Source: Thalia democratica (Eukaryota). Taken from it: a stretch of 64,000 nucleotides of DNA. The translations under genes were made by a program, and so were the position numbers. This document shows positions 10,642 through 63,390 of the stretch, in pieces. How positions within the stretch are numbered: position 1 is the first letter of the stretch; the number at the start of each line of letters is the position of its first letter. The notes under the pieces were generated by a model that saw only the letters and a program-made list of their open reading frames with translations, had not been told where the DNA came from and searched no databases. Location: positions 18,166,001-18,230,000 of the forward strand of contig OZ241829.1 in the NCBI GenBank assembly GCA_965202585.1. Direction: 5' to 3'.

Positions 10642-10931
10642 GTGCGTTTCAAGTAATTTTTTTTGTTAATCAAGTTTAGATATAATAGCACAAATTTACA
10701 CGTAATTTGCATTTTGTGGACTAAATTACTAACTATTTTACAACAAAAAAAAGCACTTATCACTAATTATACCATTTTTTTTTTAATTTTCTTTCAACAA
10801 TCTTTTTTAAAACAAAAAGTATTATTAACTTTTTCTACAACTTGTCGGAATAATAACTTACTATTTGTTTACTTGCAACATGTAAAACACTTTATTAACC
10901 TAAGTTTATCTATGATAATTTTTTTTATAAT

Positions 10932-13462: not shown

Positions 13463-13677
13463 TCACAGCTCAGTGCAAGTAACAGGCGGTTGCCAACCGT
13501 CATGTTCCGAGCAAGTCGATTCGCCGTCGTTCGCAGCTACAAAGCCAGCACTACATGTGTACTTGACCGTAGTTCCAACAAAGAAATCATTTCGCACTTT
13601 TCCACCTGCGTAATTGTTTTCATTCGAAAACTCCCTACTGGAAACATTATCGTAATCAGAAAAATCTCTTGGGCATG
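13463..13677 (-). CDS. Terminal CCP exon 67 with stop codon
   Basis: phase-1 acceptor; CPRDFSDYDN..VKYTCSAG..TCSEHDGWQPPVTCTEL*; TGA at 13463-13465. Confidence 0.85.
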
Positions 13678-34600: not shown

Positions 34601-37600
34601 AAGTTTAACAATTACGTTATGATATAGTTTTTCAAAGCATTATCAAGAAAATTTACAAAATATAAACATGGCAAAAAATATAACACTTTAGTAATATTGA
34701 CCGATTTAAATAGCATCTAGATTATACTTTCTTTTCAGAAACAGAACCTAAAACAAAGACATTAGATAAAATCATTAACCAAATATTACTATCAGTATAG
34801 CATTTTTCACAAACTTAAATTGTAACTAAAAGAAATGAGATTAAAACCTGGGTAGCACTGAAAAATTGACGTCCATTGACCGTTTTCATCACAAGTTAAT
34901 TTGGACACATTTGACACGAAATCAGCATTGCATGTGTACTTAACTTCAGTACCATTCAAATAAACCTCTCCTCTTTTATTAGGATTGAAAATTTCGGGAT
35001 TTTGAGCGTTTTTAACTGTTGGTATATCATCGCATTCTGAATATTAACATTTGAGGTAGTTTAATTTTGGTTTGTTTGAAACAATTGTCGCATAAACTAC
35101 AAATTATTAAAAAAAAAGAACAGCATTGAGAATACTGAAAAAACCTTTTTTCAATCGTCTAATCGTTTTAAAAATCTACACACAAGTTTCACACAAACCT
35201 TTAATGCAACTTATTATTTCTTCAGGTTCCCACGTTGCTCCCAGTTCACAACGGAATCGAACATTTGCATTTTCGTTTACCAGATAGTAATTAGGATTAC
35301 AGCTATAATCAACTATACTTTCTACCATGCTTCCATTATCAAGCCTCACAGTTTTATATGGAGTTGTATACGAGTTTTGAGTGTATGGAGGTACTTCGCA
35401 GACTAAAAATACGTGTATATGAGTCATATCACTTGCAAATAAAACTAGACTTGATGGTTCAAAGAATATTTTAAGCAACCAGTTTGTATTTTATATAATG
35501 ACTACTAATCGGTATTTAAAAGATGTAATCGTTATTTATTTTTGAAACTTTTTTTATAAACACACTTTGAATATTAAATATTTGAAAGTATTTTCTAATT
35601 TTTAATTTAAATTTGTCAAAATTTAGTATTTAGCACCAAACTATAAAAATCGTATAGTTTTTGTTTATTCTTTGCTTGTTGTTTTGTTTTTACTCACGTG
35701 GAGCACACTCAGGGGCATTTTGAAAGTCCCAGCTTCCATTAAAGTCACAAGTCAGCGTTTTATTTTCACCCCACAAAAAACTGTGTGAAGGAGCACACTC
35801 GTAGGTAACTTCAGTTTCACTCCAAAACTCGTCTTTTTTATGGCTGAATGTTATATCTGAAGTGACGTAATCTCCTACAGGAGGCGATGGACATCCTAAA
35901 GGAATGTTAATTGTTATTCCCTTATAATATTAAAAATAAGGACATCTATTTTCGAAATAAACAAGCTGATTCAAAAAATTTAAAAACAAAGCTTAAAAAA
36001 ATAAAATAAACTAAATTACTGATTTTGACTGCATTTGAACACGTTTGTAAAACCTCCACAAAACTAAATTAATCTAGCAAATTAGGTCAGTTAAAGTTTA
36101 TGAAAGAATTAAAAAAAAAAACACAGTTGGTTCATAATTAAAAATAAAACTAAAAAAAAATCAAGATGGTAATTAAAGGTATTATTTTAAATAAAAGAAC
36201 ATAACTGACTTTTTTTTTATATCTAGTAAGACTGTATTTAAGCCAAAAATTAAGGTAACTTAACTTTATAAAATCCAAATCTATCTTGTAAATTACATAT
36301 AAACTAATAATTCTCTTTTTATGAAGTCGTCTATACAAAATTATGCTGTGACAGCTACAAATTATCAAATTTAGTTTCTATGTTTTTATGTCTTTAAAAT
36401 TAATTGCGAGTGTTTGACTTAAAACGAGAGATTTAACTTAATTAGTTTTTATACTTAATCGTAAAACTTTTTGTACTTTAAAAAATATGAAATCTTGTAA
36501 GTTAAACTAAAGCAAATATTATACTTATAAGTTTTAGTTAAAAAAAATAAGTTTTTACATAACGCGTATTAACTTGTGATACAGAGAGGTTCTCTAGTGT
36601 TGTTATAAGATCCATTTTCTAAACACTTGTATACATAATCACTTGATGTCCCATCATGAAATATATAGTTATTATTACAAGTATAACTTAAAATATCACC
36701 ATCTACGTATACTTTGTTTCTTTTTTGGTGAAGAATATTTAAATTTCCGTTTGGTATGTCATCGAGTTTAGAACAACCTAAATAAAATAAATATTATAAC
36801 GCTGTGGTCACTAGTTGCCTGATAAGTTCGACAATAAACATTGGTTTACCAAAATCGTAAAAATATATCTAAGTTTATTATGTCTATCTTTTAAAAAAAA
36901 AAAATAAAATATTAACTCACAAACCTAAAATTTAAGTTTTTTAGAAAAAGGTAATTTATGTTACTTAAAACAGGAATTTAGTATCAATGATTAAAATATT
37001 ATATATTTTTAGTTTTGAATTTTGTTGACAAGTAAAAGCAAACATAATATGTTAACAATTAGGTTTTACACTTACAATTTATGAAACTTCAGTTTTATTT
37101 TACATTATAACATGTTCAAATTATTTATTTTGATTAATAACAACATTAATGAAAAAATAATGTTTTATATGAAAATAAACAATTTGACCGACTTTTTAAA
37201 CATTCAAACTCATTCTTCTCCCAGTCTCCACCATTTACACAGTTGTAAGTTGTATTAACAGACTCTGGCACCAAAAAGTACGAATTTTTGCAAGTGTAAG
37301 TAACTCTTTGCTCAATTGTTTCTGAATTAACTTGATATTCTAAGTTAATAGTTTTTTCTGCGTTTGGTATTGTTGGTGATGGGCCACAATCTGGAAAAAC
37401 ACTAGGATTTTTAGAAATAATTTGTAAATTATAAAACACGAAGTTAAGCATAACGTAAATAAAGTTACAAAATAGTAACAAAACTTTTGTTAAGTAAAAA
37501 AAAATCAAGTTTCTCAATAAGCAATATGGTAAACTTTTAATACGCAGTAGGTAGTGTATAACTTAAAATGAATTGTTTTTTTACGTGTTGATTAGACTAG

Positions 37601-40600
37601 CATTATAAACAAAAGGGAAGAAAATATTCTATTTAGATTAATAGTTATTTTACAGAGGTTGTTAGACTTAAAATAAACTAAAATTTTTATAATATAACTT
37701 TTTACAAAAAGTATAGTTATTTAAAAAAAATATATAAATTTCTATATTAAGACTTTCAACCGTTTTATTAAAGTCGCTTTGAAGGATGATTAAAAGTATG
37801 CAACTAATGCGAAGCGTGATACCGTCATATGGCATGTGAAAAAATTTAAAGTTAGCTCTAATTTTTTTTTATGTCAAAATAATCAATATCTTAAAAACGC
37901 TAAAAAGGGGAAATTTAGATTTTATAGGTTACTGCATTTAAGTTGGTTTATTTGCTCTGTACCGACAATATGTCACAATGCATCGTAACTATTTCCAATA
38001 TATTGAAGTGAGAAGTTTTAAAAATGGCAAATACTGCTTTAAAAAACTGCTTTTGATGATCTAATAAATAACTATACATAATTTACCAAATATATTTGAA
38101 AAACTAAACTAACTGAAGTAGTAATTTGAGCTTATTTTATAAAAGGGTGAACAAATTATTTCTTTAAATTTATATCGAATGCTTGGTGATTTATTCAATA
38201 ATGTGTTCTATTTGAATGGATCTTAGTTTTAGAAGTACCAATTATGAATCATTATGGTTAAAATATTTTATTCAAATTGACAGTAACAGCATTATTATTT
38301 TTTTAGAAATATTTTAAATTGTCATTTTGAATCCTTGAACCTTATATTCAGTAAAAGTAGTCAGGTTTTTTATTAGAAAACAAAAATAGTTTAAATTACA
38401 CTACTATATTTGAAGATAGTCATACAAAATATTTAAGCTATAAATTTACTTCTGTTAGAAACTATTTATATTAATTCAAGGACTTTTGTCTTACGATTAT
38501 GTGAAAATTTGTTATATTTTCATTAATAAAAAAATCACACTTAGAAATTAAGTTATGTTCAGAAACCTGGATAGCACTCAAAAGTTGGGGTCCATTCACC
38601 GTTTTTACCGCAAGTCATTCTTGAAACTTTTGGCACGAAATTTTCTCTGCATGAATAATCAAGTTCAGATCCACTTAAATCGTAGCCTCCACTTCTTATT
38701 GGATTAGTGATAGTGTGAGATTGAGTGTTTAGTATAGTTGGTACTTCATTGCATTCTAAGTTATGATGTTAAAGCAATTTAAATTCACTTTGAAAGATTT
38801 ATTTTCTTTTTCACTTAAAAAGTTAATTTTTTTATACTTTTGTACGTAGATTGTTAAAGTAACTTAGTAGCAAATAGTATTTTGTTGCTTAACTTACTAT
38901 TCAGACATTCAAACTTTTCATTGGTAACCCAAGATCCATTTACACAAGTATGGGTAGTGTCTGCAGACTCTGGTACTTTAAAGTACTGTTCTTTGCAAGT
39001 GTAAGATACAACTTGCTCAACTGTTGTATCTGAATTAACGTTAACAACTTCACCCACACTTTTTACAGTGTTTTCTATATTTGGTGATGATCCACAATCT
39101 AAAAATAGTTTTAGTTTTATTTTAACCGAAGTTAGATAAACTTTAAATGTAAGCGCAATATACAAAATAACTGTATTAGTTTGTGTTTATAAAAACAAAT
39201 AATTTTTTTTATGTTATCCTAAAATTTTACTTAACTTTAAAAATATTTTTATGCATAATTAAGTTAACTAACTAAGGTAAATGGTATCTTAAATATTCAA
39301 ATAAATCTTTTATAGAAGCAAAACTGAAACAACAACAAACTTTTTTTTAAAATGTAAGGTAACTGTAATTAAGCCAATAAATAATTATAACTAATATATA
39401 TAACATATATATAATAAACTTAACTAACAGAAACAGTAATAAAACTTTTCTAAGAATAAGGTGAAAATATTATTTTATTAAGGGCTCCCTTTGAATTTGA
39501 ATCAACTTTTTCACAACTTAGTCTTATTTCATTGAGTTTAAACTAAGCTACAATATGCTTTTTACAGATTTTTAAAACTCAAAGCAACTTTAAGATAAAA
39601 TGTACTTTTATATCGAATGCTGGGTGATATGTTCAATAATGTACTCTATTAAATTGATTATTAATTTTACAAGAACAAATTATGAGTTATGAGTCACTAT
39701 GGTTAGAATAATAATACAAATTAACAATAACAATTATAATTTTTTTTAGAAAGATATGTTTATCGTCATTTTGAATCATCGATTCTTGTATTCAGTATAA
39801 ATTTTCAGGTTGTTTTTTTAGAAAATAAAACCAGTTTAAATAACACTATTATATTTGAAGATAGTAATACAAAATATTAAAGATATAAAGTTACTGATGT
39901 TAAAAACAATTATTTAAATTAATCCAAGGACTCTTAACTTACGATTATGTAAAAATTCTTATTTTTCTTAGAATTTAAGTTAAATTCAAAAACCTGGATA
40001 GCACTCAAAAGTTGGGGTCCAATCACCGTTTTTACCGCAAGTCGTTCTTGAAACTCTTGGCACGAAATTTTCTCTGCATTTGTACTCAACTTCAGTACCA
40101 GTTAAATAAACATCTCCTTTTTGAATTGGATTAGTAATAATGTAAAGTTGAGTGTTGGTTATCTTTGGTATTTCTTTGCACTCTGTATAGTTTTCAAACA
40201 TTTTTATGTTTTACAAATAGTTATACTTTTTTTATAGTTTAACACGTAACATTTTAATCTTCTATGACTTTAATACTATTAAAGAATAAACTACTTCTTT
40301 CACAGTAAGGTGCAGTTACGTTCCATTCTCCATTGTAAATACATTCAGCATGTGTTTTATCTGAATCACTAAGAATAAAGTTGTCTTCACAACTAAACTT
40401 GATTATCGAACCTTCAAAAAGTGTTCCATCCTCATAGCTTACTTTCTGGGTAATTTCAAACTTTAAAGCTTGAGACAATTCAACTTGCTTACATTCTGTA
40501 AATATCAAATAACGTTAACACAAACTAAAATATTTATGAAATGTTTCGTTCAAAAAAAAAATCATTTAATGCATACTTTGTTGTAAAACATTATAAGTTA

Positions 40601-43600
40601 TACTCAACTCTGATTCAAAACAATTATAATTTACAATAGTTTTACTTCCTGCATAATAACAACATAAGTTTGATAAAAAAGTGATTTTATTTATCAACTT
40701 ACTTTTTAAACAGTCAAACTTTTCATTGACCCAAGATCCATTTACACAAATATGAGAAGTGTTTGCATACTCTGGTACTATAAAGTACTGATCTTTGCAT
40801 TTATAAGATACAATTTGCTCAACTGTTGTATCTGAATTAACGTCAACTACTATGTCTACACTTTTCACTGAGTTTAATATACTTGGTGATGATCCACAAT
40901 CTGTAGATGAAAAGAATGTTTATAAATAGACTGAGTATAAAAACATCTATATACTTAACTTCACTAAATAATAATTAAAAAGTTAGAAAAGCTCTCCACA
41001 AAAGTTGTTAGTTGTCAGTGCATATTAAAAAAAGAACATACAAATGATAGTTAAGAACTAAACATTAAAAATTTTGCAAATAATAGACTTTATGACCTGG
41101 GTAGCACTGGATAAATGGTGTCCATTCACCGTTTTCACCGCAAGTCAATTTCGACACATTTGACACGAAATTAGAATTGCATGTGTACACAAGTTCAGTA
41201 CTATTCAAATAAACATCTCCTCTTTTATTTGGATTAAAAACTTTGGGAGTTTTGGCGTTATTAATGGTTATTATTTCATTGCATTCTAAATGTTGAAACT
41301 TAAATTGGTTTAAAACTGATGTGTTTTAAATTAGTTGCGTATAAATTAGAAACTTTATAATAAAAACTTAATGAAAAAGAGTTTTTTTTTGTTTTTGTTA
41401 TAAACTGTTCATAGTTTTATGTTCTGTTTCTATTGTTAGTTTCTGGAGATAAATAGAGAAATGTATCTTAAATCGCCACAAAAAAAAAAGAATCGTAGAG
41501 AGTTTTATTTACCTGTTATATACCTAAATAAAAGTATTGTTAGTAATTAAATTTGTTAAACCTTTAATGCAACTTATTAGTTTTTTAGGTTCCCACGTTG
41601 CTCCCAGTTCACAAACAAATCGAACATTTGCATTTTCGTTTACCAGATAGTAATTAGGTTTACAGCTATAATCAACTACACTTTCTTCAATGCTTCCATT
41701 ATCAAGCCTTACGGTTTTATTTGGAGTTGTATACGAGTTTGGAACATAGGGTGGAACTTCACAAACTTGAAATATAAATTTTGTTCCAATAAAATTAAAA
41801 TTATATTTCAATACCTACAGCAGATTAAAGTGTTAAGAATTTTATTTAATGAATTGATGATATTATTATTTTTTGTGTTTTCTATTTTGTTATCATACAT
41901 AAACACGGTAAAAACTTTTAATTTAAATGTGTCAAAACTTACTATTTGAATACATAAGTAAATAAAAAACGACAATTTTTTTGATAATTATGTAAACATG
42001 TTTAAAATTTTTATTGTCTTTTTTACTAACCTGGAGCACACTTTGGGGCATTTTGAAAGTCCCAACTTCCATTAAAGTCACAAATCCGTGTTTTATTTTC
42101 ACCCCACAAAAAACTGTGTGAAGGAGCACACTTGTAGGTAACTTCAGTTTCACTCCAAAATTCGTCTTTTTTATGGCTGAATGTTATATCTGAAGTGACG
42201 TAATCTCCTACAGGAGGCGATGGACATCCTTTTACAATGTGATAATTTAACTTGTAAAATTCATAATTTCTTTTAACGACAATGCACTCCAGTATTGAAA
42301 TAAGAGATAGTTTGTAAAACCAACTTAACAGTAATCTTACTAAAACAAATAGCTCTTGAGCCCACTAAATCAATATTTACAATATTGAAAAGTTATTAAC
42401 GAATTAAACTACAAAGAGTTCAAAACGTTGTCACTTTCCCACGGAGTAACTTCATGTCACGTGTGTCATGTTACATGAGTCGTCAGGCTTGTACATAGTA
42501 ACGACTCGTGCGAAAATAAATACCGTGAAAAAGCAAGGACGTGCGAAATTAGCGCTCGATGTGTAAGTGACGTTCCGTGTTTGTTAGACACCTATCCATT
42601 TTAAAAGAATAAAAAACTAGTACTTTTATTTGTTTTATGACATAGCTCAATTTTGTAAAATTTGTGTCTTTAAAAAAACAATGAATGATCTTAACTTATC
42701 GATTAGGAGAATACAGGGTTTGTGTGCGCAATTTTTTTTTAATTTGCCTGATTGAGACCGATTAAGCCTGATATTTTTTAAAGTAGGAAAAAATCATTTT
42801 AGAAGTAATTTTGGGTATGGGGGGTCTTGATTAGTACTATTGTAGTCTCTGACTTTAACGGCTTTATGGCAAGATTATTTTGAGCTTTAAATATCTCCAA
42901 AAAGCAACTCATAGCTTAGTTACAACTCAATAAAATAAGACTAAATTATAAAAAAAGTGATTGACTCCCACTCCCCTATGCCCTTAAGATGAAAAAATCA
43001 GTGATAAGTTTTAAAATAAGTGTTATATCTAATCTATTACTAGTGTAAAAATGTAATATATATTACAAAACACAATTGTTCAATTTAGTTTAGCATTAAA
43101 TAAAGACATTATAACTAGAAAATTTATAACAAAACGACGTGCATTGTAGTGTTTTATTAACATTTAAAATTAAAGGTTACACAAGTATTAAAATAAGTAC
43201 AACATGTTTATTATAGTATTTAGATTAATACTTAAAATTGATATATAGTTATAAATCCTAAACTCTAAATATATACAGTGATTGTTGATTTCATATCAGA
43301 TTTAAAAAGCTTACACTTAAATTAAAAAAAAAACCTTTAATAGTTTGTTGTTGTAAAGAAAAATAAATTGTACCTAAAATTTGTACTCCCTCAAACTTAG
43401 TACTTATACCTTAAAGGTAAGTTTTAGTGTTGTGAATATCTCTAATAATTTTAAATAAATAAATAGTAAAATGTATGAATAAACTAGTAAGAGTTTTGAT
43501 CTAAAAGGTATTTGTTATAAAGCCTTAAAATTATAAATTAAAACAGTTCAACCAACTAAGCTCTGAAAAACATAGCTGATGTAAACAAATTCAAACAAAC

Positions 43601-55600: not shown

Positions 55601-58600
55601 TTAAGTTTATTCGTAAGCTTTGTATATAAAAATCCAGCATTTGCCTCTGATGACTTTCACCGATGTTTTCGTGTATCACTCTTTGACAAATATTAACGTT
55701 ACTAATTTAAAGAATTTATTATCTTTTTAATAAAGCCTATCAGTTTTTTAGCTTTTATGAGCTTAAACCTTAGCAAGTTTTATTAATTTTTATACAACGA
55801 CTACACTTTTCAAGCAAAGCTGTGTGTTTTACTACTTTTTTGTATCATAAAAAAACTAACCTTTCACACAGTTAAACTCATCACCACTCCAAAAACCGCC
55901 TTCTAAACAATTGTAATCGGTACTTGCAGACGCAGGTGTTGTTATAAACGGTTCTATGCAAGTGTAGGAAACTTTTAGCTCTATTTCTAAATTCTCATCT
56001 ACTTTGTTCGTTTTATGTACATGTTTATCTGCGTTAGGTACATTTGGCGAACGACCACAACCTATAAAAAGGTTAGTAAATATCTTTCCATTTTATTAAA
56101 TTATCAATTACATTTTTCAAATATAAATACAAGCAGAAAAAGTAATAATAAAAGAGTAAAAACTTTTATAAAATTTAATGTTGATGGTTAAAACTTTTAA
56201 ACTATCGTAACTAAAAAAGTTTTTGACTTGTAAAAATTATATTTACTAGTAAAGCATTGTATGGGCGGATCCCAAACTCCATCGACACTGCAGGCAGATT
56301 CGTAGTTGCTCTGATCGTAACCCTCGTTACACCAGTATTCTATTGCGGTTCCTGCTAAATACACACCGTCTCTTTTGTTCTCATTGATAAATGAGTAGAG
56401 GAAGGTGAATCTTCCTGATGGATCATAGTTTCTAATTACACCGCATTCTGCATAAAAAGGAATTTTATTGTAATTTTAAAACGGAAGTTAGCTGCAGCAG
56501 ATGTATCCATCGATTTTATGTAGTACTGATTTTTAATAACCAAAGTAGTAAATGTAGTATTTTAATGTCTTTAAGCCTTATCATAAAATCAAAAACTAAA
56601 AATCTTAACACTTTGGCCTTAACAAATGACAGATTTTGCTGCAAGTTATAAATTGTTCATACCTTTTAAACAGGTAGGCAGCTCTTTAGGGGTCCATAGT
56701 TCGCCCAAGTTGCACTCAAACCTCATGTTGGCAGTCTCATCGCTGAGATGATACCCCTCAATACACTCGAATTCAACAACATGGCGTACCACATCTTCAG
56801 TAGCGGAAACATTGAGCTCAAGCGTGTTGTAGTTAGAGTTTTCAATTAAAGGAGGCTGGTCACAAGCTTAAAAAAGGTTTTGCCTTAAATAAAAACTTGG
56901 CTTAAGTTCGTAGTAAACTTGGCACTAAGCTTTAATTTTGTAATAAAATATGAAATAAGAATCTTTGGTTTTTTCAAACTTTATAAATAACTGTTAGACC
57001 TACTCCTTTATTTTTATATGTTTTGAAATTTACATATTTAAGTTAGATTTTTCTCACCTTCTTTAACTCGTAAAACTTATTAATACTGTAAAGCTATAGT
57101 ATTAAGTTTTTTAACATGGTTCTTACATCTTAAGTTAATACCACTCACCCGGAACACAACGTGGAGCGCGATCCACGTCCCAGCTGCCATCTCTGCCACA
57201 AGTCGTTGCTCCAATTTCGCCCAGCGCCAGTTTGTGCGCAGCGGAGGTGCAAGCGTAGGTCACCCGGGTGTCGGTCCAAAATTCCCCTTTTCTGTGACTG
57301 AACGTGATGTTCCAACGAGTTTGGTTGTTTTTGGGAAGAACATCGCACTCTGTTTTATGGTTAAAGAAAAAAAAAGGTTCAATAAAAAGAACAATTGAAA
57401 ACTATAACATATACTTTATTATGATACAACATGTTATAAATAAAAACTAATGAAATCAAAAATAATACTATGGTGTATAATGTTTTATGTTTTATTATTT
57501 AAAACTTAATGATAGAACTTTAAATTTATTTAAAATTTCAGACTTAAAATTTTAGGTTTTAACTTAAAAAGAAGTGCATAAACTTCTTTAAATACTGTAT
57601 TTGAAAAAAATACCTTTAATGCAAATAGGCACGACAGAATTGTTATATAACCCATTTTTTAAACATTCTAAGACATAATTATCTGCCATGCCAGTGTGGA
57701 ATTGGTATCCTTCATCACAAACGAATTTGAATGTGTCAGATTGCACATACAAGTCAGCACGAGTTTGGATAACAACAATAAGTTTTCCGTCTGGTATTTC
57801 ATCGAGTGCTGGACATTCTATAAAAATAATAAAATCACTTTGTTACACGAAATACTCAATTATAACACGTCAAAAAATTTATCTAGATTCTTGACACTTT
57901 ATACTTATTACTTAGTATATATAAATTGAAAAGTTTCAAAAATCAATAAAATGAAAGTCATGATTATTAAGAAATAAACTTTTCAAGCAAGTCGGAAAAG
58001 TTGAGTTCCAATCTCCGTCTTCGTTGCACCTAATTGCTGAAAGTTGAGGATCATCAATCGCATACCCCTCTTCACAAGACATGTACAAAACAAAGTCAGT
58101 TACGAAAAGTTCATCATAAACACTAGTTGGTGCCATTTGTAAACCAGTTGTCATATTAAATCTAGGACATTCTGTTAGTTTAATTTATTGAGATTTTAAC
58201 AAGATATACTTTAGTAAACGTTTGTTTATTGAATTTTAGTTAACTAGTCTGCAACGCTTAATACATTAACATATATTTAAAAGTTCTTTTGAAAGTAAAA
58301 TAATTTCCACTTTTGTGTTGATAGAATTTTAGATTTTATGGAAAAGTTCTAAAAAAAGCAACCTAAAACTAAACTTACTTTGTCCGCATTTAGGAGCGGT
58401 TTCGTGACTCCAGGTGCCATCTTTACCGCAGGTAAGAACTTCAGGTTGGTTGTACTTGAAAGAGTATCCTACAAAACAAGTGTAAGTAACCTTAGTACCG
58501 CTCCAAAACACGCCTGCTTGGTAACTGTAGTCTACTGTCATTGTTGATAGTGAACCTTCTGGTGGAGACGGACATTCTGGAAAGCAAAGTTTTTAGCTCA

Positions 58601-61600
58601 GGAAAATTAGATTTAATTTTAAGCAAATTTAGTACTCATTAAATCCTGACTTTTTATTAGTTATAAAATGTATATTAGAAAAATTTATCAGTATTAAATA
58701 TTTTGGGTCTTATCAGTAGTTCTAACAAACTAAAGTTTAGTTGTTTTTTTTTTTTGCATTTAGAAATACCTTATGTAAAAAGATTTTATGCTTTTGCTTA
58801 AATTCTAATTAGAAAAACCAAACAAAAAACATTGTTTACTTTTAAATAAGGTGCATAAGGTAATATTCGTTATTAAATTAATGAAATTTCTAAATAACTG
58901 ATTCATGGACTATAAAACACTAGCGCAATATTTTATTAAGACTAAAACCAACTTAATAAACTTTCAACAAACTACCAACTTTTTAAACAAACAGGATATG
59001 ACGGCTCAAATTTTCCAGTTTTTTCATTGCAATTCAATTCAGCCGGCAGTTCAGATGGTTTGCTGAAACCTTCATTGCAAGAGTACAAAACTTGATGTGG
59101 AATTGCTATTTCAAACGACGATCCAGAGTAGGACACAATGACATTTTCATACAAAGTCGTTTTGAACTTTCCATTTTCGATGGGCTTAGGTGTGCCACAA
59201 TCTACATAATGGACTTGGCGTATACTCATTTTATAAGGTTAAAAGGAATTAAAACAGTATTAATTACAAAAACCTTTTGAGGCCATTTGAAATTACTAAC
59301 TTTAACACTTAGGTGGAAATAAGCTTTAAACTAAAGTCAATGCACATAGTTTATATATAAATTATTAAACTAAAGCTGTGATAGGGCTGAAAAAAATAAA
59401 CCAAGATAACAAATACGGCAACTATTTTTTCTATGTAATAACTTATTTTACCTGCGTAGATTAACTATTCTACGTTTAATTAAAAGCTTTAATTTTGTCA
59501 CTAATAGCGCTTCAACCGACCTTTGACACAAAAAGGAGTAGAAATGCTCCACTCGCCGTTTTGTAAGCATTCAGCAACCAAATTTGTCGAGTCGCTGAGA
59601 ATATAATTTTCAACGCAGCTAAACTTGACAGTTGCTCCGCTGAAGAGCTTACCGCCATAATGAGTTTCGCTGCTAGAATTTATAAGCAGACCTCCAGTTG
59701 GTACTATCTCGGTGCACTCTGAAACAAAATCAATGTAAAGGATTAATAATACAACCAAAAAAATATATATCTTACTATGCAAGCAGCTAAATTCCTCTTT
59801 AGTCCAAGACCCTCCATTGATGCAATTATACGTGGTTCCGGCGTTTTCAGGAACTAAGTAGTAAGGCTCTCGACAAATATAAGACACATTGAGCTCAACT
59901 TTTGTTTCAAGATCAACTTCAAACTTTTCATTGACAGTTTTCAATGCGTTTAGTATATTTGGTGAAGGACCACATTCTTTTAATTAAAACAACTTTTTTA
60001 GTTTGTTTAGAAAATAAATAAAGATTTTATATCATAGAATAATTATCTTTTATATTTTAACTACTACTTATCTTAAAAAATTCTTACCAGGATAGCACTC
60101 TATGACTGGATACCATTTACCATCAACACCACAAGTAGAAACTGTTGCGTTTTGTACGTAATTATCCTTGCAAATGTACTCAACAGAAGTACTATTTAGA
60201 AGAATGCCGTTTCTTTCGTTTGTGTTTGTAGTTTTGTTGGATTTGGTTTTTTCAACAACTGGAGTATCATCACACTCTTAAAAATTTTAAATATACAGAG
60301 ACAAATAAATACTACATACTTACGAAGATTGTTTCAAAATACCTGAAAAATTCTATTAGGTAAAAAAAAAGTTAATATTTGCATTCATTAGTTATTCTCT
60401 GCTTAATATTTAAACACTTATTTATTATTTAAAACTTTAAAACCAAGTTTTAGAATTATTCCAGTTTATCATCATAGCTTTTTATATCTAAATCTCAAAC
60501 TAAATGAAGTAGTTTATTATCAAAGACTTAACAATACATTGGTAAAGATGAGCTAAAAGATAAATTTTGTATAATGTGAACTTATTTATCTACCTTTTAT
60601 GCAAAATATCGGATCATTAGGTAACCATGAGGATTGTCTGTTGCTGCACTCAGATCGAACAACAGCAGATTCGTTGCTCAGATAATAGCCGGGTTTGCAA
60701 GAATACTCAACAACATACAACTCTACAACCCCACTATCTGATGTTTCAAGGTCTATTGTCATGATGTTCGAGTTTTCTACAATAGGAGGATTTTCGCAAG
60801 CTAAAAAACAAAAAAAAATATAATAATTAAAAAAAAAGCTATATAAATAGTTGTAAGTATAAAGTTCGTTTAAAAGCAAACTTTTCAAAGTTATTTGTTT
60901 TTAAATATAGCTACATGAGTAAATAAAAATGTGCAAATTAAATATTTTAATTACTACCAGATTTCGGTAGTAATTAGGTATTCGCAAAAAAATACAACCT
61001 TTTCAACTAAAATAAAATAGTAAACTGCGCATAACAATGTTGCACATTTTGATTTGCACATTTTTATTTTTATAAGTTCTTTACATTTCAGTAAATTGAG
61101 CAATCTTTTTTAATTAAGACAAGTAACTATATATAGCTACTATATAAAACAAGTTTTTTGTAGCATTAAAAAACTTCCTAAAACTTTTTTTTTTGAAAAC
61201 TAATAAACTACTCAGCAAAATAAGTATTAAATATTTATAATAAGACGGACTAACGAAACTAAGAGATCAAAACAAAATAAAACTGCAGTGCTAAACCAGT
61301 TTTGATATTAACAGATATGTTTTTTTCTTATATATTTATTTATTAAATTTTAACCCGGAACACAAGTAGGAGCGAAATCATGATCCCAAAGTCCGTTTCT
61401 GCCACAAGTCAGCTTTTTAGGCTCGTTCCATTTGGGAGTGAACGAAGCGTTGCTGCAAGCGTAAACTACTTGGGTTCCAGTCCACATTTCACCATCTATG
61501 TGGCTGAATGATACCTTCCAGTAGACTGAATCACCTTCGGGTGGACTGATGCAATCTATCGGTTTGTTATTTTATTTTACAACATATATACTTTATCGTT

Positions 61601-63390
61601 TACTTAAACCAACTGTAGGCAACTAAAATTCAATGTTAAAGTATACCGGGTATTATTAAAAACGACAAACTTTACTTACAAATTAGCTTAACACAAGAGG
61701 CGATTATTTGAAATCATTACAAATTAAAATATTTAATTTTACTACTTGTGATGCAAATAGGAACATTTGTGTTGTTATACGATCCGTCTTCTAGACACTT
61801 GTATATGTAGTCATCAGAACTTCCCTTGTGAAACATGTAACCTTCATCACAAGCATAACTAAAAACGTCATTACTCAGATAGAAATTAGCACGAGCTTGG
61901 TTGACAGAGTGTAACTTTCCGTCCTGCACCTTTTGGAGTGTTGGACATCCTGCAATAATTTAATGAAACAAATTTAGCAATCAAATTACGTTTTAGAAGT
62001 AAAATTTAGCATCATTTAATTAAAGCAAAGAATCAAAGCTTTGTACAGTTAAACGGATATTTTATCTTTACGAACAAAAACTATGCAATTAAAATTTTAA
62101 CCGAGTTTATAGTACGAATAAATTAGTTTTATATGTGGACTGTAGAAATAACTGGATAAGTTTTAACTCTATAAATTTTATTATATGTTTTGGTTTTAAG
62201 AAAATAAATAGAGAGATCTCAACTACTGGAGGAGAAATAATGAATTTATTCTTTTAAGAATTTATTTGACTAACTAAGTTTCGGTCAAAGACCTCGTCAG
62301 TGCTTAAATAATTTCAAAATTTCTTCTTAAAAAACTAAACAAATCAAATTTTAATATTATGACTGAGTTTAAGGTAAATTTTAGATTTTAGTTAAGTTTT
62401 AAAATCAATATAACAACAATAATAATAATAATAGCTGTATGTAGCTTTCTTTTTCTTCTAGTTAATTTACAAAGTAAACATTACTTAAGCAAAAGTGTAA
62501 TTAATAAAGTGATCTTAAAATTGAGTTGAATTTAATGTAGCTTATTTTTATTTTGAATATTTATTTTATTTATATGAATATAAATTTTATTATGACTTTT
62601 CGAAAAATTTTGTGTACAAACGTTTTAGTGTCAAAATATACCTTTAAAGATAAAAACTAAAAGTAAAATAATACTTTAGAGAGTTAAACATTATTTGACA
62701 TTAGAATAATTTCTTTCAAACTATATAAATGAGACTCAATTTTTAGAACAAGATATATTTCATGCTTCTTTCATCAGTTGAATACTAAGCAATAAAAATA
62801 AAAATAATAATATTATAACTTTAGAGAGTTATAATAGAAACGACTACATAGCTAACAGTTACATTTTCTTAGCATAAGTGTTAGTTAAATTCATTAATTA
62901 TTATCTAATAATAAATAAAGTTAAACAAGTTACAAATACTGAGATGTAGTTGCAACGACATATTTAACCGGTTAAAAAACAAGTTGCTCTATGGTGTTTA
63001 CCAGATATGATAAAAAAAAAGTTTGTTAATAATTCTAATATGCATGAATTAGATTTATTTTAGAAACTGTGTACAACAAGAAAATTTTTCTTAATTAAGC
63101 ATACCAGAATATATAAATAGAAAAATAAATAATCTAATTCTAAATATTAAGCATTATTATATGTTTAATTTAAAAAGCAAACAATGCATGCTTACTTTTT
63201 TTGCATTCAAAATCAAATTCACTCCATTGACTGTTACTTTCACACGACAGAACAGCTGGGTTGATGTCGCTAAAACTAAAACCTTCTTCGCACATGTACC
63301 TGACTTCCGCGCCTTCCAAAAATTCCCCTTCAGTAAAACCGTAATCAGCAACCAACCTCATGTTCAGCCCTTCAGGAGGTTGTTGACACT
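13463..63390 (-). CDS. Giant multi-sushi/CCP protein with two ILEI/PANDER-like domains (5'-incomplete; 67 exons, ~4,400 aa in window)
   Basis: 67 exons traced manually, each with an AG acceptor and GT donor. All internal CCP exon lengths are multiples of 3 (phase 1-1), and no in-frame stop was seen before TGA at 13463-13465. CCP exons carry the C..C..C..W..C pattern. Individual exons are listed below; class letters A-H are my own labels. Confidence 0.9.
14089..14349 (-). CDS. CCP exon 66 (atypical: 6 Cys, RRKR)
   Basis: phase 1-1; CDVDPIACETGLPCPDP..WVRRKRWVSC..WWPYPLPKCLR. Confidence 0.85.
14530..14745 (-). CDS. CCP exon 65
   Basis: phase 1-1; CPEPPKISEY..WSPKTAPNCGL. Confidence 0.88.
14882..15322 (+). 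mobile_element. Penelope-like element GIY-YIG endonuclease fragment (intronic, antisense to host gene)
   Basis: C..NCPV..YCL.NVIYQAKV..HIGSTKRTFK.KYNEHK..LWDL..IEWKIV..LCNLE..LNKRNELVTQCPH. Confidence 0.82.
16251..16445 (-). CDS. CCP exon 64
   Basis: phase 1-1; CPLLDVPDGS..WNNTNEAICMK. Confidence 0.88.
16695..16904 (-). CDS. CCP exon 63
   Basis: phase 1-1; CPTSPISEDD..WNTSNIPQCVK. Confidence 0.88.
17301..17516 (-). CDS. CCP exon 62
   Basis: phase 1-1; CGDPKEIEKG..FTPDPPSCVYI. Confidence 0.87.
17680..18240. mobile_element. Kolobok-like MITE copy
   Basis: Left GGCATAAGAGGG, right CCCCTTCTATGCCC|TTAA; internal block similar to the 2.1 kb and 26.5 kb copies. Confidence 0.6.
18715..18849 (-). 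CDS. Exon 61: ILEI/PANDER-like domain 2, part 3
   Basis: phase 1-1; RQSYALVSHK..EWTRCKN..FKPIE; donor position less certain. Confidence 0.7.
20377..20557 (-). CDS. Exon 60: ILEI/PANDER-like domain 2, part 2
   Basis: phase 0-1; LGSMSDYIRNNAKDFEVVIIGVVDA..NLGA..CTGFRFYG. Confidence 0.78.
20955..21187 (-). CDS. Exon 59: ILEI/PANDER-like domain 2, part 1
   Basis: phase 1-0; LHVRASSFSV..RGFNVIILNPFEKYLMYKYEIFDTY. Confidence 0.8.
21320..21538 (-). CDS. CCP exon 58 (unique)
   Basis: phase 1-1; CEKPPSLNIS..WVTPGLEFSGDHLCIR. Confidence 0.87.
21594..21794 (-). CDS. CCP exon 57 (class E)
   Basis: phase 1-1; CGKSPNIPGT..WTSYSSFQCLR. Confidence 0.88.
22134..22322 (-). CDS. CCP exon 56 (class D)
   Basis: phase 1-1; CSEIPNVDNT..WTPAFQCYP. 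Confidence 0.88.
22632..22829 (-). CDS. CCP exon 55 (class E)
   Basis: phase 1-1; CGPSQDIPNT..WVYNDFQCLQ. Confidence 0.88.
25112..25447 (+). mobile_element. Penelope-like GIY-YIG fragment nested in the hAT element
   Basis: Open frame not in the ORF track: KEYIGSTGSQFKKRWYAH..TELSKYIW..RWS..CKTCNLEKIEIALA..LNKRQELFYTCPHFRKF*. Confidence 0.85.
25750..25798 (+). ncRNA. Type I minimal hammerhead ribozyme (Penelope-associated)
   Basis: Stem I TTTACAGGC/GCC(T)TGTAAA; core CTGAAGA 25759-25765; stem II TCCC-TTAG-GGGA; GAAAC; stem III loop ATT; cleavage triplet GTA 25786-25788. Confidence 0.82.
26483..27000. mobile_element. Kolobok-like MITE copy nested in the hAT element (right end not resolved)
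   Basis: TTAA|GGCCATAGGGGGG start, shared internal block, and an internal inverted repeat (~26680-26730 vs ~26905-26955). Confidence 0.55.
29077..29274 (-). CDS. CCP exon 54 (class E)
   Basis: phase 1-1; CGLSRAITNA..WVFKEFECLS. Confidence 0.88.
30817..31011 (-). CDS. CCP exon 53
   Basis: phase 1-1; CADPPKGQNV..WPHTEAPTCLR. Confidence 0.87.
31147..31329 (-). CDS. CCP exon 52
   Basis: phase 1-1; CENPPPVLYN..WKHAVGCLR. Confidence 0.85.
31737..31862 (-). CDS. Exon 51: ILEI/PANDER-like domain 1, part 3
   Basis: phase 1-1; THHSWVVVTGRFPEHAPVPSWAEC..FSFD. Confidence 0.75.
32484..32652 (-). CDS. Exon 50: ILEI/PANDER-like domain 1, part 2
   Basis: phase 0-1; LERMAAFIEDNSNYGDVIVMAVRG..AKIG. Confidence 0.78.
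32920..33104 (-). CDS. Exon 49: ILEI/PANDER-like domain 1, part 1
   Basis: phase 1-0; TFHVYALSAGYG..RGTGVAIINPLTDTVQYNRFDTM (RG-x-V...FDT motif). Confidence 0.78.
34392..34583 (-). CDS. CCP exon 48 (unique)
   Basis: phase 1-1; CPYPPLEGRS..WDRSTPPACTP. Confidence 0.88.
34848..35036 (-). CDS. CCP exon 47 (class D)
   Basis: phase 1-1; CDDIPTVKNA..WTSIFQCYP. Confidence 0.88.
35199..35402 (-). CDS. CCP exon 46 (class C)
   Basis: phase 1-1; CEVPPYTQNS..WEPEEIISCIK. Confidence 0.88.
35698..35895 (-). CDS. CCP exon 45 (class B)
   Basis: phase 1-1; CPSPPVGDYV..WDFQNAPECAP. Confidence 0.88.
36574..36777 (-). CDS. CCP exon 44 (class A)
   Basis: phase 1-1; CSKLDDIPNG..YNNTREPLCIT. Confidence 0.88.
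37193..37390 (-). CDS. CCP exon 43 (class E)
   Basis: phase 1-1; CGPSPTIPNA..WEKNEFECLK. Confidence 0.88.
38567..38755 (-). CDS. CCP exon 42 (class D)
   Basis: phase 1-1; CNEVPTILNT..WTPTFECYP. Confidence 0.88.
38898..39098 (-). CDS. CCP exon 41 (class E)
   Basis: phase 1-1; CGSSPNIENT..WVTNEKFECLN. Confidence 0.88.
39994..40182 (-). CDS. CCP exon 40 (class D)
   Basis: phase 1-1; CKEIPKITNT..WTPTFECYP. Confidence 0.88.
40295..40495 (-). CDS. CCP exon 39 (class F)
   Basis: phase 1-1; CKQVELSQAL..WNVTAPYCER. Confidence 0.88.
40703..40900 (-). CDS. CCP exon 38 (class E)
   Basis: phase 1-1; CGSSPSILNS..WVNEKFDCLK. Confidence 0.88.
41097..41285 (-). CDS. CCP exon 37 (class D)
   Basis: phase 1-1; CNEIITINNA..WTPFIQCYP. 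Confidence 0.88.
41562..41765 (-). CDS. CCP exon 36 (class C)
   Basis: phase 1-1; CEVPPYVPNS..WEPKKLISCIK. Confidence 0.88.
42031..42228 (-). CDS. CCP exon 35 (class B)
   Basis: phase 1-1; CPSPPVGDYV..WDFQNAPKCAP. Confidence 0.88.
42714..43995. mobile_element. hAT-like non-autonomous element
   Basis: TIRs CAGGGTTTGTGTGCGCA / TGCGCACGAACCCTG; subterminal GCCTGA motifs; flanks AGAATA/AGAATG only partly TSD-like. Confidence 0.65.
42813..42983. mobile_element. Mini Kolobok-like MITE nested in the 42.7 kb element
   Basis: GGGTATGGGGGG ... CCCCTATGCCC|TTAA. Confidence 0.5.
44273..44476 (-). CDS. CCP exon 34 (class A)
   Basis: phase 1-1; CRKLDDILNG..YNNTKEPLCIT. Confidence 0.88.
44580..44777 (-). 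CDS. CCP exon 33 (class B)
   Basis: phase 1-1; CPSPPTGDNL..WDFQNAPKCIP. Confidence 0.88.
45681..45884 (-). CDS. CCP exon 32 (class A)
   Basis: phase 1-1; CHKPDNIPYG..YNNNRKPLCIT. Confidence 0.86.
46371..46583 (-). CDS. CCP exon 31 (unique)
   Basis: phase 1-1; HRCIEVPSVT..WRSVPATAVPMCGK. Confidence 0.88.
46940..47125 (-). CDS. CCP exon 30 (unique)
   Basis: phase 1-1; CGAPPKKDNM..WQGVVGNCYS. Confidence 0.88.
47349..47558 (-). CDS. CCP exon 29 (class H)
   Basis: phase 1-1; CGFPKNITNG..SLNAPKCVT. Confidence 0.86.
47720..47920 (-). CDS. CCP exon 28 (class F)
   Basis: phase 1-1; CQKIILRDKL..WNVTAPYCVK. Confidence 0.88.
48290..48487 (-). CDS. CCP exon 27 (class E)
   Basis: phase 1-1; CGPSQDIPNT..WVYNDFKCLQ. 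Confidence 0.88.
48661..48849 (-). CDS. CCP exon 26 (class D)
   Basis: phase 1-1; CNRIPTITNA..WTPTFQCYP. Confidence 0.88.
49010..49213 (-). CDS. CCP exon 25 (class C)
   Basis: phase 1-1; CEVPPYVPDA..WTPKKLISCVK. Confidence 0.88.
50106..50303 (-). CDS. CCP exon 24 (class B)
   Basis: phase 1-1; CPSPPEEEYV..WDFQNAPKCAP. Confidence 0.88.
51077..51280 (-). CDS. CCP exon 23 (class A)
   Basis: phase 1-1; CSKLEAIPNG..YDNIITPLCIT. Confidence 0.88.
51381..51578 (-). CDS. CCP exon 22 (class G)
   Basis: phase 1-1; CPKVEISSKV..WNSTFPTCHI. Confidence 0.88.
51942..52145 (-). CDS. CCP exon 21 (class E)
   Basis: phase 1-1; CGSSPTFPQT..WDIASINCLK. Confidence 0.88.
52710..52880 (-). CDS. CCP exon 20 (class D, short)
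   Basis: phase 1-1; CDKIPSVENS..WRPTMECIP. Confidence 0.88.
53400..53606 (-). CDS. CCP exon 19 (class C)
   Basis: phase 1-1; CSVIPLVNNS..WSFTRLPQCVK. Confidence 0.88.
53912..54109 (-). CDS. CCP exon 18 (class B')
   Basis: phase 1-1; CPSPPEGSLS..WSHKSAPECRQ. Confidence 0.88.
54392..54598 (-). CDS. CCP exon 17 (class H)
   Basis: phase 1-1; CGAPDNIEDG..FRPRPVCVK. Confidence 0.88.
54909..55097 (-). CDS. CCP exon 16 (class F)
   Basis: phase 1-1; CKEIEATEAL..WNVTANSCVK. Confidence 0.88.
55861..56061 (-). CDS. CCP exon 15 (class E)
   Basis: phase 1-1; CGRSPNVPNA..WSGDEFNCVK. Confidence 0.88.
56247..56447 (-). CDS. CCP exon 14 (class D)
   Basis: phase 1-1; CGVIRNYDPS..WDPPIQCFT. Confidence 0.88.
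56663..56866 (-). CDS. CCP exon 13 (class C)
   Basis: phase 1-1; CDQPPLIENS..WTPKELPTCLK. Confidence 0.88.
57149..57349 (-). CDS. CCP exon 12 (class B)
   Basis: phase 1-1; CDVLPKNNQT..WDVDRAPRCVP. Confidence 0.88.
57614..57817 (-). CDS. CCP exon 11 (class A)
   Basis: phase 1-1; CPALDEIPDG..YNNSVVPICIK. Confidence 0.88.
57980..58171 (-). CDS. CCP exon 10 (class G)
   Basis: phase 1-1; CPRFNMTTGL..WNSTFPTCLK. Confidence 0.88.
58379..58576 (-). CDS. CCP exon 9 (class B')
   Basis: phase 1-1; CPSPPEGSLS..WSHETAPKCGQ. Confidence 0.88.
58980..59201 (-). CDS. CCP exon 8 (class H)
   Basis: phase 1-1; CGTPKPIENG..FEPSYPVCLK. Confidence 0.88.
59521..59718 (-). CDS. CCP exon 7 (class F)
   Basis: phase 1-1; CTEIVPTGGL..WSISTPFCVK. 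Confidence 0.88.
59776..59976 (-). CDS. CCP exon 6 (class E)
   Basis: phase 1-1; CGPSPNILNA..WTKEEFSCLH. Confidence 0.88.
60088..60276 (-). CDS. CCP exon 5 (class D)
   Basis: phase 1-1; CDDTPVVEKT..WYPVIECYP. Confidence 0.88.
60594..60800 (-). CDS. CCP exon 4 (class C)
   Basis: phase 1-1; CENPPIVENS..WLPNDPIFCIK. Confidence 0.88.
61355..61555 (-). CDS. CCP exon 3 (class B)
   Basis: phase 1-1; CISPPEGDSV..WDHDFAPTCVP. Confidence 0.88.
61746..61949 (-). CDS. CCP exon 2 (class A)
   Basis: phase 1-1; CPTLQKVQDG..YNNTNVPICIT. Confidence 0.88.
63196..63390 (-). CDS. CCP exon 1 (B'-like)
   Basis: phase 1-1; CQQPPEGLNM..WSEFDFECKK. Confidence 0.88.

Follow-up and report, generated by a model that had tools for sequence, protein, structure and literature searches.

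Human CR1 is built from long homologous repeats (LHRs), each with seven CCP modules, and its allotypes (F and S) differ in the copy number of these repeats. In titin, Ig and Fn3 modules are arranged in super-repeats with 7- or 11-module patterns, and SVEP1 and CSMD proteins are marked by VWA, EGF, pentraxin or HYR domains, or by sushi modules that alternate with CUB. At the gene level, CR1 holds four to five copies of the 7-CCP cassette, mostly with one CCP per exon, and with the cassettes the ligand sites are repeated too (PMC2189104, PMC2189269, PMC2188588). Identity among its LHRs runs from 61 to >99%, and homology extends to their non-coding DNA (PMC2189104, PMC2189269). Among tunicates, vCRL1 of Ciona is polymorphic and has many splice variants (PMC5465252), and the fester locus of Botryllus, which contains a sushi domain, is under selection (PMC3549757).

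Here, we analysed a stretch of 64,000 nucleotides from the marine tunicate Thalia democratica (hereafter the window), whose minus strand, from 13.5 to 64 kb, is predicted from its sequence to be one giant gene; its splicing, its single transcript and its expression are likewise predictions. With a CCP profile built from the window, 61 CCP modules were found between 63391 and 13472 on this strand. One more CCP exon lies just upstream, 229-468 bases past the window end on the minus strand, giving a total of at least 62 CCP/Sushi modules, 46 of which (m02-m47; 3,054 residues) form a super-repeat made of recurring blocks of the same 6-9 module types. We are confident that this is a giant CCP gene that evolved by duplication of whole blocks. 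In this genome, mitochondrial cox1 follows the ascidian code, with AGR read as Gly and TGA as a sense codon, and DNA of the window is present in marine metagenomes.

A preliminary description of this DNA had seen in it an LHR-like design, and a cassette of 6-9 modules does recur about five times. The resemblance to CR1 lies in the CCP-only extracellular chain, mostly with one module per exon, in the tandem multi-module cassette (7 modules 4-5 times in CR1, 6-9 modules about 5 times here), and in gene copies that differ by gain or loss of whole cassettes. The two systems differ in that cassette number varies between alleles in CR1, while the variation reported here was seen among paralogues; in that the LHRs reach >99% identity and have homologous introns, whereas corresponding modules of the Thalia blocks are 39-94% identical at the amino acid level and their introns are mostly diverged or unalignable; in the lack of a visible transmembrane or cytoplasmic exon in the window gene; and in length, the window gene being twice as long (62 versus 30 CCPs). 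As for the comparison with titin, which had also been put forward, it did not survive beyond an analogy of design: in titin and nebulin too, an ordered set of module types is repeated at a higher-order period, by block duplication, but their modules (Ig/Fn3 or nebulin) are intracellular and follow a filament as template, and the modules here are CCP, not Ig or Fn3.

No specific kinship with RCA proteins was detected, similarity being that of CCPs in general (34% identity to a turtle CR1/DAF-like protein, with class profiles scoring 8-17 bits). When run against Ciona, Styela, tick and turtle CR1/DAF-like proteins, profiles of the module classes A-H defined below scored only at the level of generic CCP similarity, and the best identity to any outside protein was 34-38%. 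Because these classes did not turn up in CCP proteins of Ciona, Styela or vertebrates, we conclude, in agreement with the preliminary description, that the design arose independently of CR1. The best long database matches (37-38% identity) were SVEP1-/CSMD-like multi-CCP proteins of Ciona and Styela, likewise long tunicate chains. However, their modules are not recognised by the class profiles; the Ciona protein (P0002) is a period-1 array with ~70% identity at every lag and the Styela protein (P0010) is without periodicity. Finally, vCRL1 and fester resemble the window gene in being extracellular CCP proteins of tunicates for which variation at the level of exons matters, but they are short and membrane-anchored with few CCPs.

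Module classes and their order

The blocks and the flanking modules are listed below in transcript order.

63196..63390, minus strand: upstream CCP exon m01, B'-like, outside the super-repeat
57980..61949, minus strand: block 1, m02-m10, A B C D E F H B' G, nine CCP exons, each with 4 Cys, an AG lying 2 nt ahead of Cys1 and a GT 7 nt past Cys4
53912..57817, minus strand: block 2, m11-m18, A B C D E F H B', eight CCP exons; E, F, H and B' modules pair with those of block 1
51381..53606, minus strand: block 3, m19-m22, C D E G, four CCP exons
47349..51280, minus strand: block 4, m23-m29, A B C D E F H, seven CCP exons
46371..47125, minus strand: singleton CCP exons x (m30) and y (m31)
44580..45884, minus strand: short block A B, m32-m33
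40295..44476, minus strand: block 6, m34-m39, A B C D E F, six CCP exons; its nearest relative is the last block (B 94%, C 84% amino acid identity)
38898..40182, minus strand: D E unit, m40-m41
37193..38755, minus strand: D E unit, m42-m43
34848..36777, minus strand: last block A B C D, m44-m47; B exon plus ~100 bp of intron 85% identical to the m35 region
21594..29274, minus strand: downstream modules of the repeat classes, E m51 (29077-29274), E m52 (22632-22829), D m53 and E m54
13468..17516, minus strand: tail m56-m61, with H-like m56, m57, A-like m58, m59, m60 and m61

Each of the 61 modules contains exactly four Cys and is encoded by an exon of 171-222 nt. When exons were compared with the Pfam Sushi model (PF00084, cut-off of 20.7 bits), those tested from classes A, C, E+F, H and G reached the cut-off, and a class D exon (18.7 bits) and one E exon (20.0 bits) fell slightly under it. 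No match was obtained for the tested B exon, for an H exon (47290-47511) or for a C exon (53380-53586); these exons still fit the CCP profile made from the window, as do all modules. Of the classes, A (where the motif GSYNN is found) and H are without a Trp between Cys3 and Cys4; B, B', C, D, E, F and G have one. Without this conserved residue, classes A and H are best described as divergent CCPs.

The order of m02-m47 is [ABCDEFHB'G][ABCDEFHB'][CDEG][ABCDEFH]xy[AB][ABCDEF][DE][DE][ABCD], exactly the class string given in the preliminary description. Its diagnostic motifs are also readable in the modules, namely YNN..P.CI (A), FSH..EFW..AP.C.P (B), NE.A.VRF.C (C), W.P...CYP (D), CG.SP/YFLVPE (E), FSC..N.IL.DS (F), WNSTFPTC (G) and IP..V.Y.C (H), and such class-specific motifs are retained between blocks of only 40-50% identity. 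This order is not random: the 45 adjacent pairs of the string comprise 18 distinct class pairs, against a mean of 36.2 and a minimum of 29 in 20,000 shuffles, and module similarity plotted against lag has a bump at lags 9-12.

That the modules fall into classes had been presented as the claim on which the super-repeat would stand or fall in a phylogeny, and both the tree and the nearest-neighbour comparison bear it out. All 44 labelled modules have their best match within their own class, the weakest assignment being that of m19 to class C (35 versus 30 bits); modules of the same class share 48% identity on average, those of different classes 28%. In the maximum-likelihood tree, A, F, G and H each form one clade (bootstrap 97-99), B groups with B', and class C is without resolution, yet without contradiction. 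The D and E clades also include the downstream modules m51-m54. Moreover, m52 is 83% identical to m27 at the amino acid level and 90% at the DNA level, and singleton y (m31) has a downstream relative in m55. Thus, while the ends proposed for the super-repeat (34848-61949) coincide with the predicted exon ends of m47 and m02, the repeat classes do not stop there: they carry on downstream of 34848 with E, E, D and E at 29274-21594, and y-, H- and A-like modules are found further downstream still.

Exon organisation and gene ends

Each CCP module is encoded by one exon, and all exons are symmetric (phase 1-1) with lengths that are multiples of 3. An AG is located exactly 2 nt before Cys1 and a GT exactly 7 nt after Cys4, each in 59 of the 61 exons. 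Introns within the super-repeat are short (57-2044 bp); that between the G and A exons of successive blocks is only 162 bp, and start or terminal exons are absent between blocks, in favour of a single gene. The 46 consecutive CCP exons are uninterrupted by any VWA, EGF, pentraxin or CUB exon. A Pfam scan of single non-CCP exons and selected open segments gave no match to ILEI, VWA, EGF, pentraxin, HYR or CUB.

At the 3' end, the open frame closes 3 codons past the last Cys of m61 (CTEL followed by a stop), and neither a membrane anchor nor a transmembrane segment with a cytoplasmic tail was seen after the CCPs. A transcript-like, intron-less relative of 781 aa (P0005) is collinear with the tail m56-m61. 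Since it has 3-residue linkers and the same kind of ending, 4 residues after its last Cys, it supports both the splice model and the C-terminus. At the 5' end, the search for a signal-peptide exon upstream of the window gene returned only chance-like candidates. Conservation singles out no exon in this region, because the entire upstream 9 kb is ~90% identical to a mirror copy. None of the sequencing runs found to contain the sequence is on record as RNA.

Block duplication, paralogous copies and the age of the repeat

The block relationships are alike in classes A, B, C and D, namely ((6,9),4) and (1,2), and in some blocks DNA matches of 579-612 bp cover two exons and the intervening intron; for example, 40184-39607 and 38757-38169 share 78% DNA identity over 604 bp, intron included. 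This agreement among classes and these exon-intron-exon matches indicate that blocks were copied as units.

Six paralogues (P1-P6) have the same module order and are 88-99% identical to the window gene, although block content differs in some; the comparison covered them up to, but not including, their 3' ends. P1 is located, with P2, on contig C2, a chromosome-scale contig other than that of the window. It shares 99.3% identity with the window over 29 kb; P2 is 97-98% identical, P3 and P4 92-95%, and P5 and P6 88-90%. The window gene, P1 and P2 have identical architectures despite a divergence of up to 3%. P3 and P4 have in common a single in-register loss of 10 exons, from B-C intron to B-C intron, which amounts to exactly one period: window position 41924, in the intron after the B module m35, is joined to 35426, 24 bp before the C module m46. 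As the junction intron measures ~96 bp, against 265-295 bp for the parental introns, homologous recombination is not proven for this loss, and a plain deletion could by chance land in two like introns, roughly 1 time in 8. Both copies have an additional duplication of m48(-m50) and E. For P5, a simple deletion was rejected; its E-D-E-A modules of the m38-m44 type reappear after m51, which points to a complex rearrangement. In P6, a D exon is frameshifted and an E exon truncated, and some copies may be decaying. Altogether, changes in block number have happened in this family, as the differences between paralogues show; alleles that differ in length are a prediction.

Class A modules cluster by position across the seven gene copies, not by gene. 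Since modules have thus remained orthologous by position, cassette duplication predates the multiplication of the gene; the repeat is old, without concerted evolution of its blocks. The dN/dS ratio between copies is 0.24-0.51, with no class above 1, and exons are more conserved than introns: all copies are under moderate purifying selection. On the same values, blanket positive selection between copies was rejected. We conclude that a nine-type cassette (A B C D E F H B' G) was copied several times as a block, after which partial copies ([CDEG], [AB], two [DE] and [ABCD]) were added or trimmed to produce the 46-module super-repeat. The gene itself was next multiplied to at least seven copies, which later lost or rearranged blocks; one such event removed [CDEFDEDEAB] in register from the ancestor of P3 and P4.

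Of the process suggested in the preliminary description, the duplication of blocks as units is supported, but an ongoing unequal crossover with length alleles is not: the blocks are old and are not kept alike, corresponding modules being 39-94% identical, with mostly diverged introns, and class A modules clustering by position. A super-repeat kept dynamic by frequent unequal crossover, with individuals carrying block-number alleles like the F/S allotypes of CR1, has in its favour that paralogues do differ in block content (P3 and P4 are without exactly one period and have the extra duplication) and that any block change would be in frame, all exons being of phase 1-1. We consider such a situation unlikely, given that blocks share just 67-92% DNA identity, over exons of ~200 bp and with mostly diverged introns, that modules group by position across all seven copies, and that three copies at up to 3% divergence have kept the same architecture. 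By contrast, CR1 LHRs are up to >99% identical and homologous in non-coding DNA (PMC2189104, PMC2189269).

The other readings concern the locus itself. Several smaller CCP genes in tandem, one per block, would account for the existence of shorter relatives such as the 781-aa protein, which has its own N-terminal hydrophobic segment, and no run recorded as RNA contains the sequence to decide. Yet each block-initial A exon opens with an AG acceptor in phase 1, with neither a Met nor a leader, introns between blocks measure only 100-486 bp, and the first stop-terminated exon is m61, which makes this arrangement highly improbable. It is very unlikely as well that the gene, as a member of a duplicated family, has fallen silent or is decaying, its pattern being a relic without present function: while P6 with its damaged D and E exons, the rearranged P5 and the lack of runs recorded as RNA go in this direction, all 61 exons of the window copy are open with four Cys, canonical splice sites stand at fixed offsets in 59 of 61, selection between copies is purifying with exons conserved over introns, and class motifs are kept between blocks of only 40-50% identity. 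Finally, the near identity of P1 on another contig could betray a misplaced haplotype. An assembly artefact, be it a false duplication of one block or a haplotig, is exceedingly improbable, however, as blocks within the gene are far too different (39-94% amino acid identity) to stem from the assembly, copies of 88-98% identity repeat the same order, and three DNA runs, under two organism labels, contain 77-79% of the sampled words of 56600-62000.

Putative function of the encoded chain

The predicted chain has 58 N-glycosylation sequons in m02-m47. Together with the CCP content and the anchor-less C-terminus, these suggest a secreted protein, which would be an extended rod some 0.2 micrometre long, heavily N-glycosylated and with linkers of 3 residues between modules. 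On such a rod, the same class-specific surfaces would be presented about every nine modules. Because they are repeated, these surfaces may allow multivalent binding of a repetitive or clustered ligand, as CR1 does with C3b and C4b. The repeated binding sites anticipated in the preliminary description are conceivable on this basis, and we see the chances of this functional picture, rod and multivalent binding together, as roughly even.

A more speculative view, which we regard as decidedly unlikely, is that the seven-gene family is a recognition or adhesion system. Symmetric exons and block gain or loss would then generate many variants in length and composition, by alternative splicing or by differences between copies, for self/non-self or gamete recognition, or would produce a multivalent filament that bears load in the tunic or mucous feeding net of a pelagic tunicate. 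The LHR principle would then be one that chordates evolved twice for multivalent binding.

With respect to architecture, the locus represents a second, independent chordate case in which an ordered multi-CCP cassette is repeated, in the style of CR1, to lengthen a protein and to repeat its surfaces. It is a further example of a known way to build long proteins, and it leaves unchanged what is known of how such repeats arise. It does offer a clean system in which to ask whether class-specific CCP surfaces recurring every ~nine modules act as multivalent sites, and how phase-1 symmetric exons permit block-wise changes in length. In addition, the seven gene copies constitute a natural series that records how cassettes are kept and lost. 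More distant CCP loci of the wider family are located at C2:76.06 Mb, C9:25.78 Mb, C1:35.14 Mb and C5:65.7 Mb.

Modules, exons and class order

The minus strand of the window carries a single gene-like array whose CCP exons are intact, under constraint and ordered in repeated blocks. In this AT-rich DNA (GC ~28%), a long series of short open segments on that strand shows the CCP pattern C…C…W…C, and a profile derived from modules of the window itself located 61 CCP modules (m01 to m61 in transcript order) from 63391 to 13472, all of them on the minus strand; the same profile found no convincing CCP module on the plus strand of the window. These 61 modules are joined by one further module:

229-468 bases beyond the window end: extra CCP module

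Against the Pfam Sushi family (PF00084), classes A, C, E+F, H and G reached or exceeded the cut-off in the exons tested, and a class D exon and one E exon scored slightly under it; no PF00084 match was obtained for one tested exon each of classes B, H and C. An AG exactly 2 nt 5′ of the first Cys codon was present in 59 of the 61 modules, as was a GT exactly 7 nt 3′ of the last Cys codon in 59/61, the off-pattern exons having a phase-1 site a few bases off or being terminal. Since the 61 exons (171-222 nt, four Cys each) are also all multiples of three, each CCP corresponds to one symmetric phase 1-1 exon, with a 3-residue linker. The predicted exons of the 46-module super-repeat (m02-m47) total 9,162 nt, which is 3,054 residues with 58 N-glycosylation sequons, and its introns range from 57 to 2044 bp. 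The E-F intron of block 1 (window 59719-59775, minus strand) has only 57 nt, is stop-free and is a multiple of three, so that its retention would add 19 mostly hydrophobic residues in frame; this is probably due to chance in AT-rich DNA.

The preliminary description had read m02-m47 as [ABCDEFHB'G][ABCDEFHB'][CDEG][ABCDEFH]xy[AB][ABCDEF][DE][DE][ABCD], where letters are module classes and x and y are singletons (m30 and m31). We recovered exactly this order, the diagnostic class motifs are directly visible in the module sequences, and the limits proposed for the super-repeat, 61949 and 34848, coincide with the exon ends predicted for m02 and m47. The 45 adjacent positions of the string yield 18 distinct neighbour pairs, compared with a mean of 36.2 and a minimum of 29 in 20,000 shuffles. 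In an all-against-all comparison, the nearest neighbour of every labelled module (44/44) belonged to its own class, with large margins except for m19 of class C (35 vs 30 bits); B and B' are mutual nearest foreign classes. Modules of one class average 48% identity, against 28% for modules of different classes. The maximum likelihood tree supports the classes: A, F, G and H form single clades (97-99 bootstrap) and B groups with B', and class C is neither resolved nor contradicted. The D and E clades include modules from outside the super-repeat, m53 with D and m51, m52 and m54 with E. The observed class order is confirmed, the sole correction being that the repeat classes go on downstream of 34848.

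Copying of exon blocks

For classes A, B, C and D, the closest copies are those of blocks 6 (m34-m39) and 9 (m44-m47), with 67, 94, 84 and 68% amino acid identity, followed by block 4 (m23-m29), which is 57-75% identical to them. Blocks 1 (m02-m10) and 2 (m11-m18) are distant in these classes, both from blocks 4/6/9 and from each other (39-52%), and are paired in the tree for E, F, H and B'. Similarity between blocks at the DNA level is mostly limited to exons (67-92%), and several matches cross exon-intron-exon.

DNA matches between blocks (window coordinates)
49220-48656 and 35409-34843: C+D, spanning exon-intron-exon
48862-48283 and 41298-40696: D+E, spanning exon-intron-exon
40184-39607 and 38757-38169: D and intron, 78%
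B and ~100 bp of intron, 85%

Shared introns and block relationships of this kind are what is predicted if groups of exons were copied as blocks and then diverged for a long time. We also considered independent single-exon duplications reaching the same order, which would leave both the shared introns and the agreement of the block relationships unexplained. Outside the super-repeat, 26 kb downstream, the E module m52 is 90% identical in DNA and 83% in amino acids to m27 of block 4 (window 22580-22836 vs 48237-48494). This match is tighter than every E-E pair within the super-repeat and suggests that m52 arose late, by copying or conversion of a single exon.

Seven gene copies

The window corresponds to G000:C5:18166001-18230000 in an assembly of 802 Mb, and six further genes in this genome (paralogues P1 to P6) have a first A exon that is 94-100% identical to m02. 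Over the 30-40 kb compared per copy, P1 is closest to the window gene in DNA, at 99.3% identity (29 kb collinear), followed by P2 at 97-98%, the pair P3 and P4 at 92-95%, and P5 and P6 at 88-90%. In every copy comparison the introns are less conserved than the exons, and dN/dS relative to the window copy ranges over 0.24-0.51 without exceeding 1 in any class. The class A modules of all copies cluster by position and not by gene, and therefore the super-repeat predates the family and its blocks have not been kept alike. Unequal crossover, which had been proposed as the origin of the repeat, is a plausible candidate mechanism. CR1-like instability today is argued against because the blocks are old and not homogenised.

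P4 and the window gene face each other head to head as arms of a large inverted duplication, which match over ~8.7 kb upstream of the genes, until ~9 kb beyond the window end. P1 lies on another chromosome-scale contig and its introns are also alike; either it was duplicated between chromosomes very recently, or the assembly has misplaced a haplotype. Elsewhere, identical weak class-A-like CCP matches recur every 41,758 bp exactly (65898987, 65940745, 65982503, 66024261), suggesting that another CCP gene forms a tandem array that is large and very young, or else an assembly repeat.

Genomic features related to the family
64401 to ~73058, mirrored by 89311-80244 (extended window coordinates): arms of the inverted duplication, 88-92% identical
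Roughly 73-80 kb (extended window coordinates): unique centre of the inverted duplication
Window 62000-64000 plus adjoining pieces L020-L022 (G000:C5:18230001-18256899): region of the inverted duplication
G000:C2:61433700-61463699 (L001-L003): P1, matching window 33001-62267
G000:C5:65862509-66117880 and contigs C47, C173 and C423: class-A-like matches spaced by 41,758 bp

The window gene, P1 and P2 have an identical 46-module order, and P3 and P4 are without [C D E F D E D E A B]. These two sister copies track the window to 41924, ~107 bp into the intron 3′ of B m35, and rejoin it 24 bp short of C m46 (35426), so that exactly one period is absent, from B-C intron to B-C intron. Since P6, and partly P5, retain modules of the type absent in P3 and P4, the long form is ancestral and P3/P4 represent a loss, a single event common to both. 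Judged from its breakpoints, this loss is the product expected from unequal recombination between the two [A B C D] units, a plausible origin. The junction intron, however, has only ~96 bp, against 265-295 bp in the parental introns, and a plain deletion landing by chance in two like introns is a less likely alternative, with a chance put at about 1 in 8. Besides the loss, P3 and P4 have an extra [m48(-m49-m50) E] duplication, in a different form in each. The sequence of P5 breaks off at 53793, in the intron 3′ of B' m18, and continues within the 3′ end of B m45 (35743), and E-D-E-A modules of the m38-m44 type appear after m51, indicating a complex rearrangement. In P6, a D exon is frameshifted and an E exon is shortened to 21 codons. 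Compared with P3, P4 also has a ~6.4-6.9 kb insertion in one intron, between an F exon (7356) and an H exon (14303; L010-L011).

Likeness to CR1 and the predicted product

Human CR1 has 30 SCRs (CCP modules), 28 of which fall into four sets of seven, the long homologous repeats (LHRs) (PMC2189104); between LHR-A and LHR-B, two SCRs are 61% identical and five >99% (PMC2189104). Its S allele has a fifth LHR, and homology between LHRs extends to introns as well as exons (PMC2189269). The window gene follows the same principle of a repeated multi-CCP cassette, but the near-identical cassettes, introns included, that underlie CR1 length polymorphism are absent, and it has neither an anchor nor specific kinship to CR1. 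It also differs from tunicate receptors of the vCRL1 type, which are short and anchored; vCRL1 itself is polymorphic and variably spliced (PMC5465252). Our literature search brought up no publication that describes expansions of sushi domains or LHR-like repeats for tunicates.

A search with module A against 1.84 billion representative proteins gave a best long-protein identity of only 34-38%, with long matches to turtle CR1/DAF-like, Ciona SVEP1-like, tick and Styela CSMD-like proteins. On these proteins, the class A-H profiles gave generic CCP scores of 8-25 bits with no class preference. In a module-similarity lag analysis, the window gene showed a bump at lags 9-12 and the turtle CR1-like protein a sharp lag-9 peak (75%), with the Ciona protein behaving as a period-1 array and the Styela protein having no period. 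From these results, the cassette appears to be lineage-specific and its likeness to CR1 a convergent design. The initial interpretation, that an LHR-like ordered cassette was repeated here and arose independently of CR1, is right on both design and independent origin.

In CCP proteins generally, each module forms a bead some 3.5-4 nm long, and chains with short linkers are extended. On this basis, the product would be a secreted, glycosylated rod of ~0.2 micrometre, which would repeat class-specific surfaces about every nine modules (~30 nm). Class motifs are kept between blocks down at 40-50% identity, which suggests that each class has its own role. Such a rod would suit multivalent binding of a repetitive or clustered ligand; multivalent binding has been shown for the CR1 LHRs (PMC2189104).

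The m61 frame reaches a stop three codons past the last Cys (…CTEL*), and no N-terminal leader exon was found in the DNA upstream of the gene. P0005, an intron-less and transcript-like 781-residue ORF on a 2,452-bp JGI contig (L026), is collinear with the window tail m57/m58-m59-m60-m61 (35-56% identity). Its CCPs are separated by 3-residue linkers and it ends four residues past the last Cys, thus giving independent support for the splice model and for an anchor-less C-terminus. It has an N-terminal hydrophobic segment, and alternating m58-like and m57-like CCPs lead into a stretch resembling a C-type lectin, followed by the m59-m60-m61 tail; the family therefore also includes short, lectin-bearing members. 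On the 3′ side, the CCP gene is bounded by the next gene downstream (plus strand, ~8-11 kb), an acyl-CoA synthetase-like AMP-binding enzyme, whose exons at window ~8200-10660 (+) weakly match Pfam PF00501. At window 3537-4064 (+), open frames weakly match an ISXO2-like (IS1595 family) DDE transposase (E 5.6e-4, under the Pfam cut-off).

Window DNA is present in marine and seawater metagenomes. Read with the standard table, mitochondrial cox1 has Arg at conserved Gly positions and in-frame TGA, so that AGR encodes Gly and TGA encodes Trp, as in the ascidian (tunicate) mitochondrial code. Several nuclear cox1 copies with many stops (numts) lie on contig C4 (G000:C4:56842736-56945724; L024, L025).
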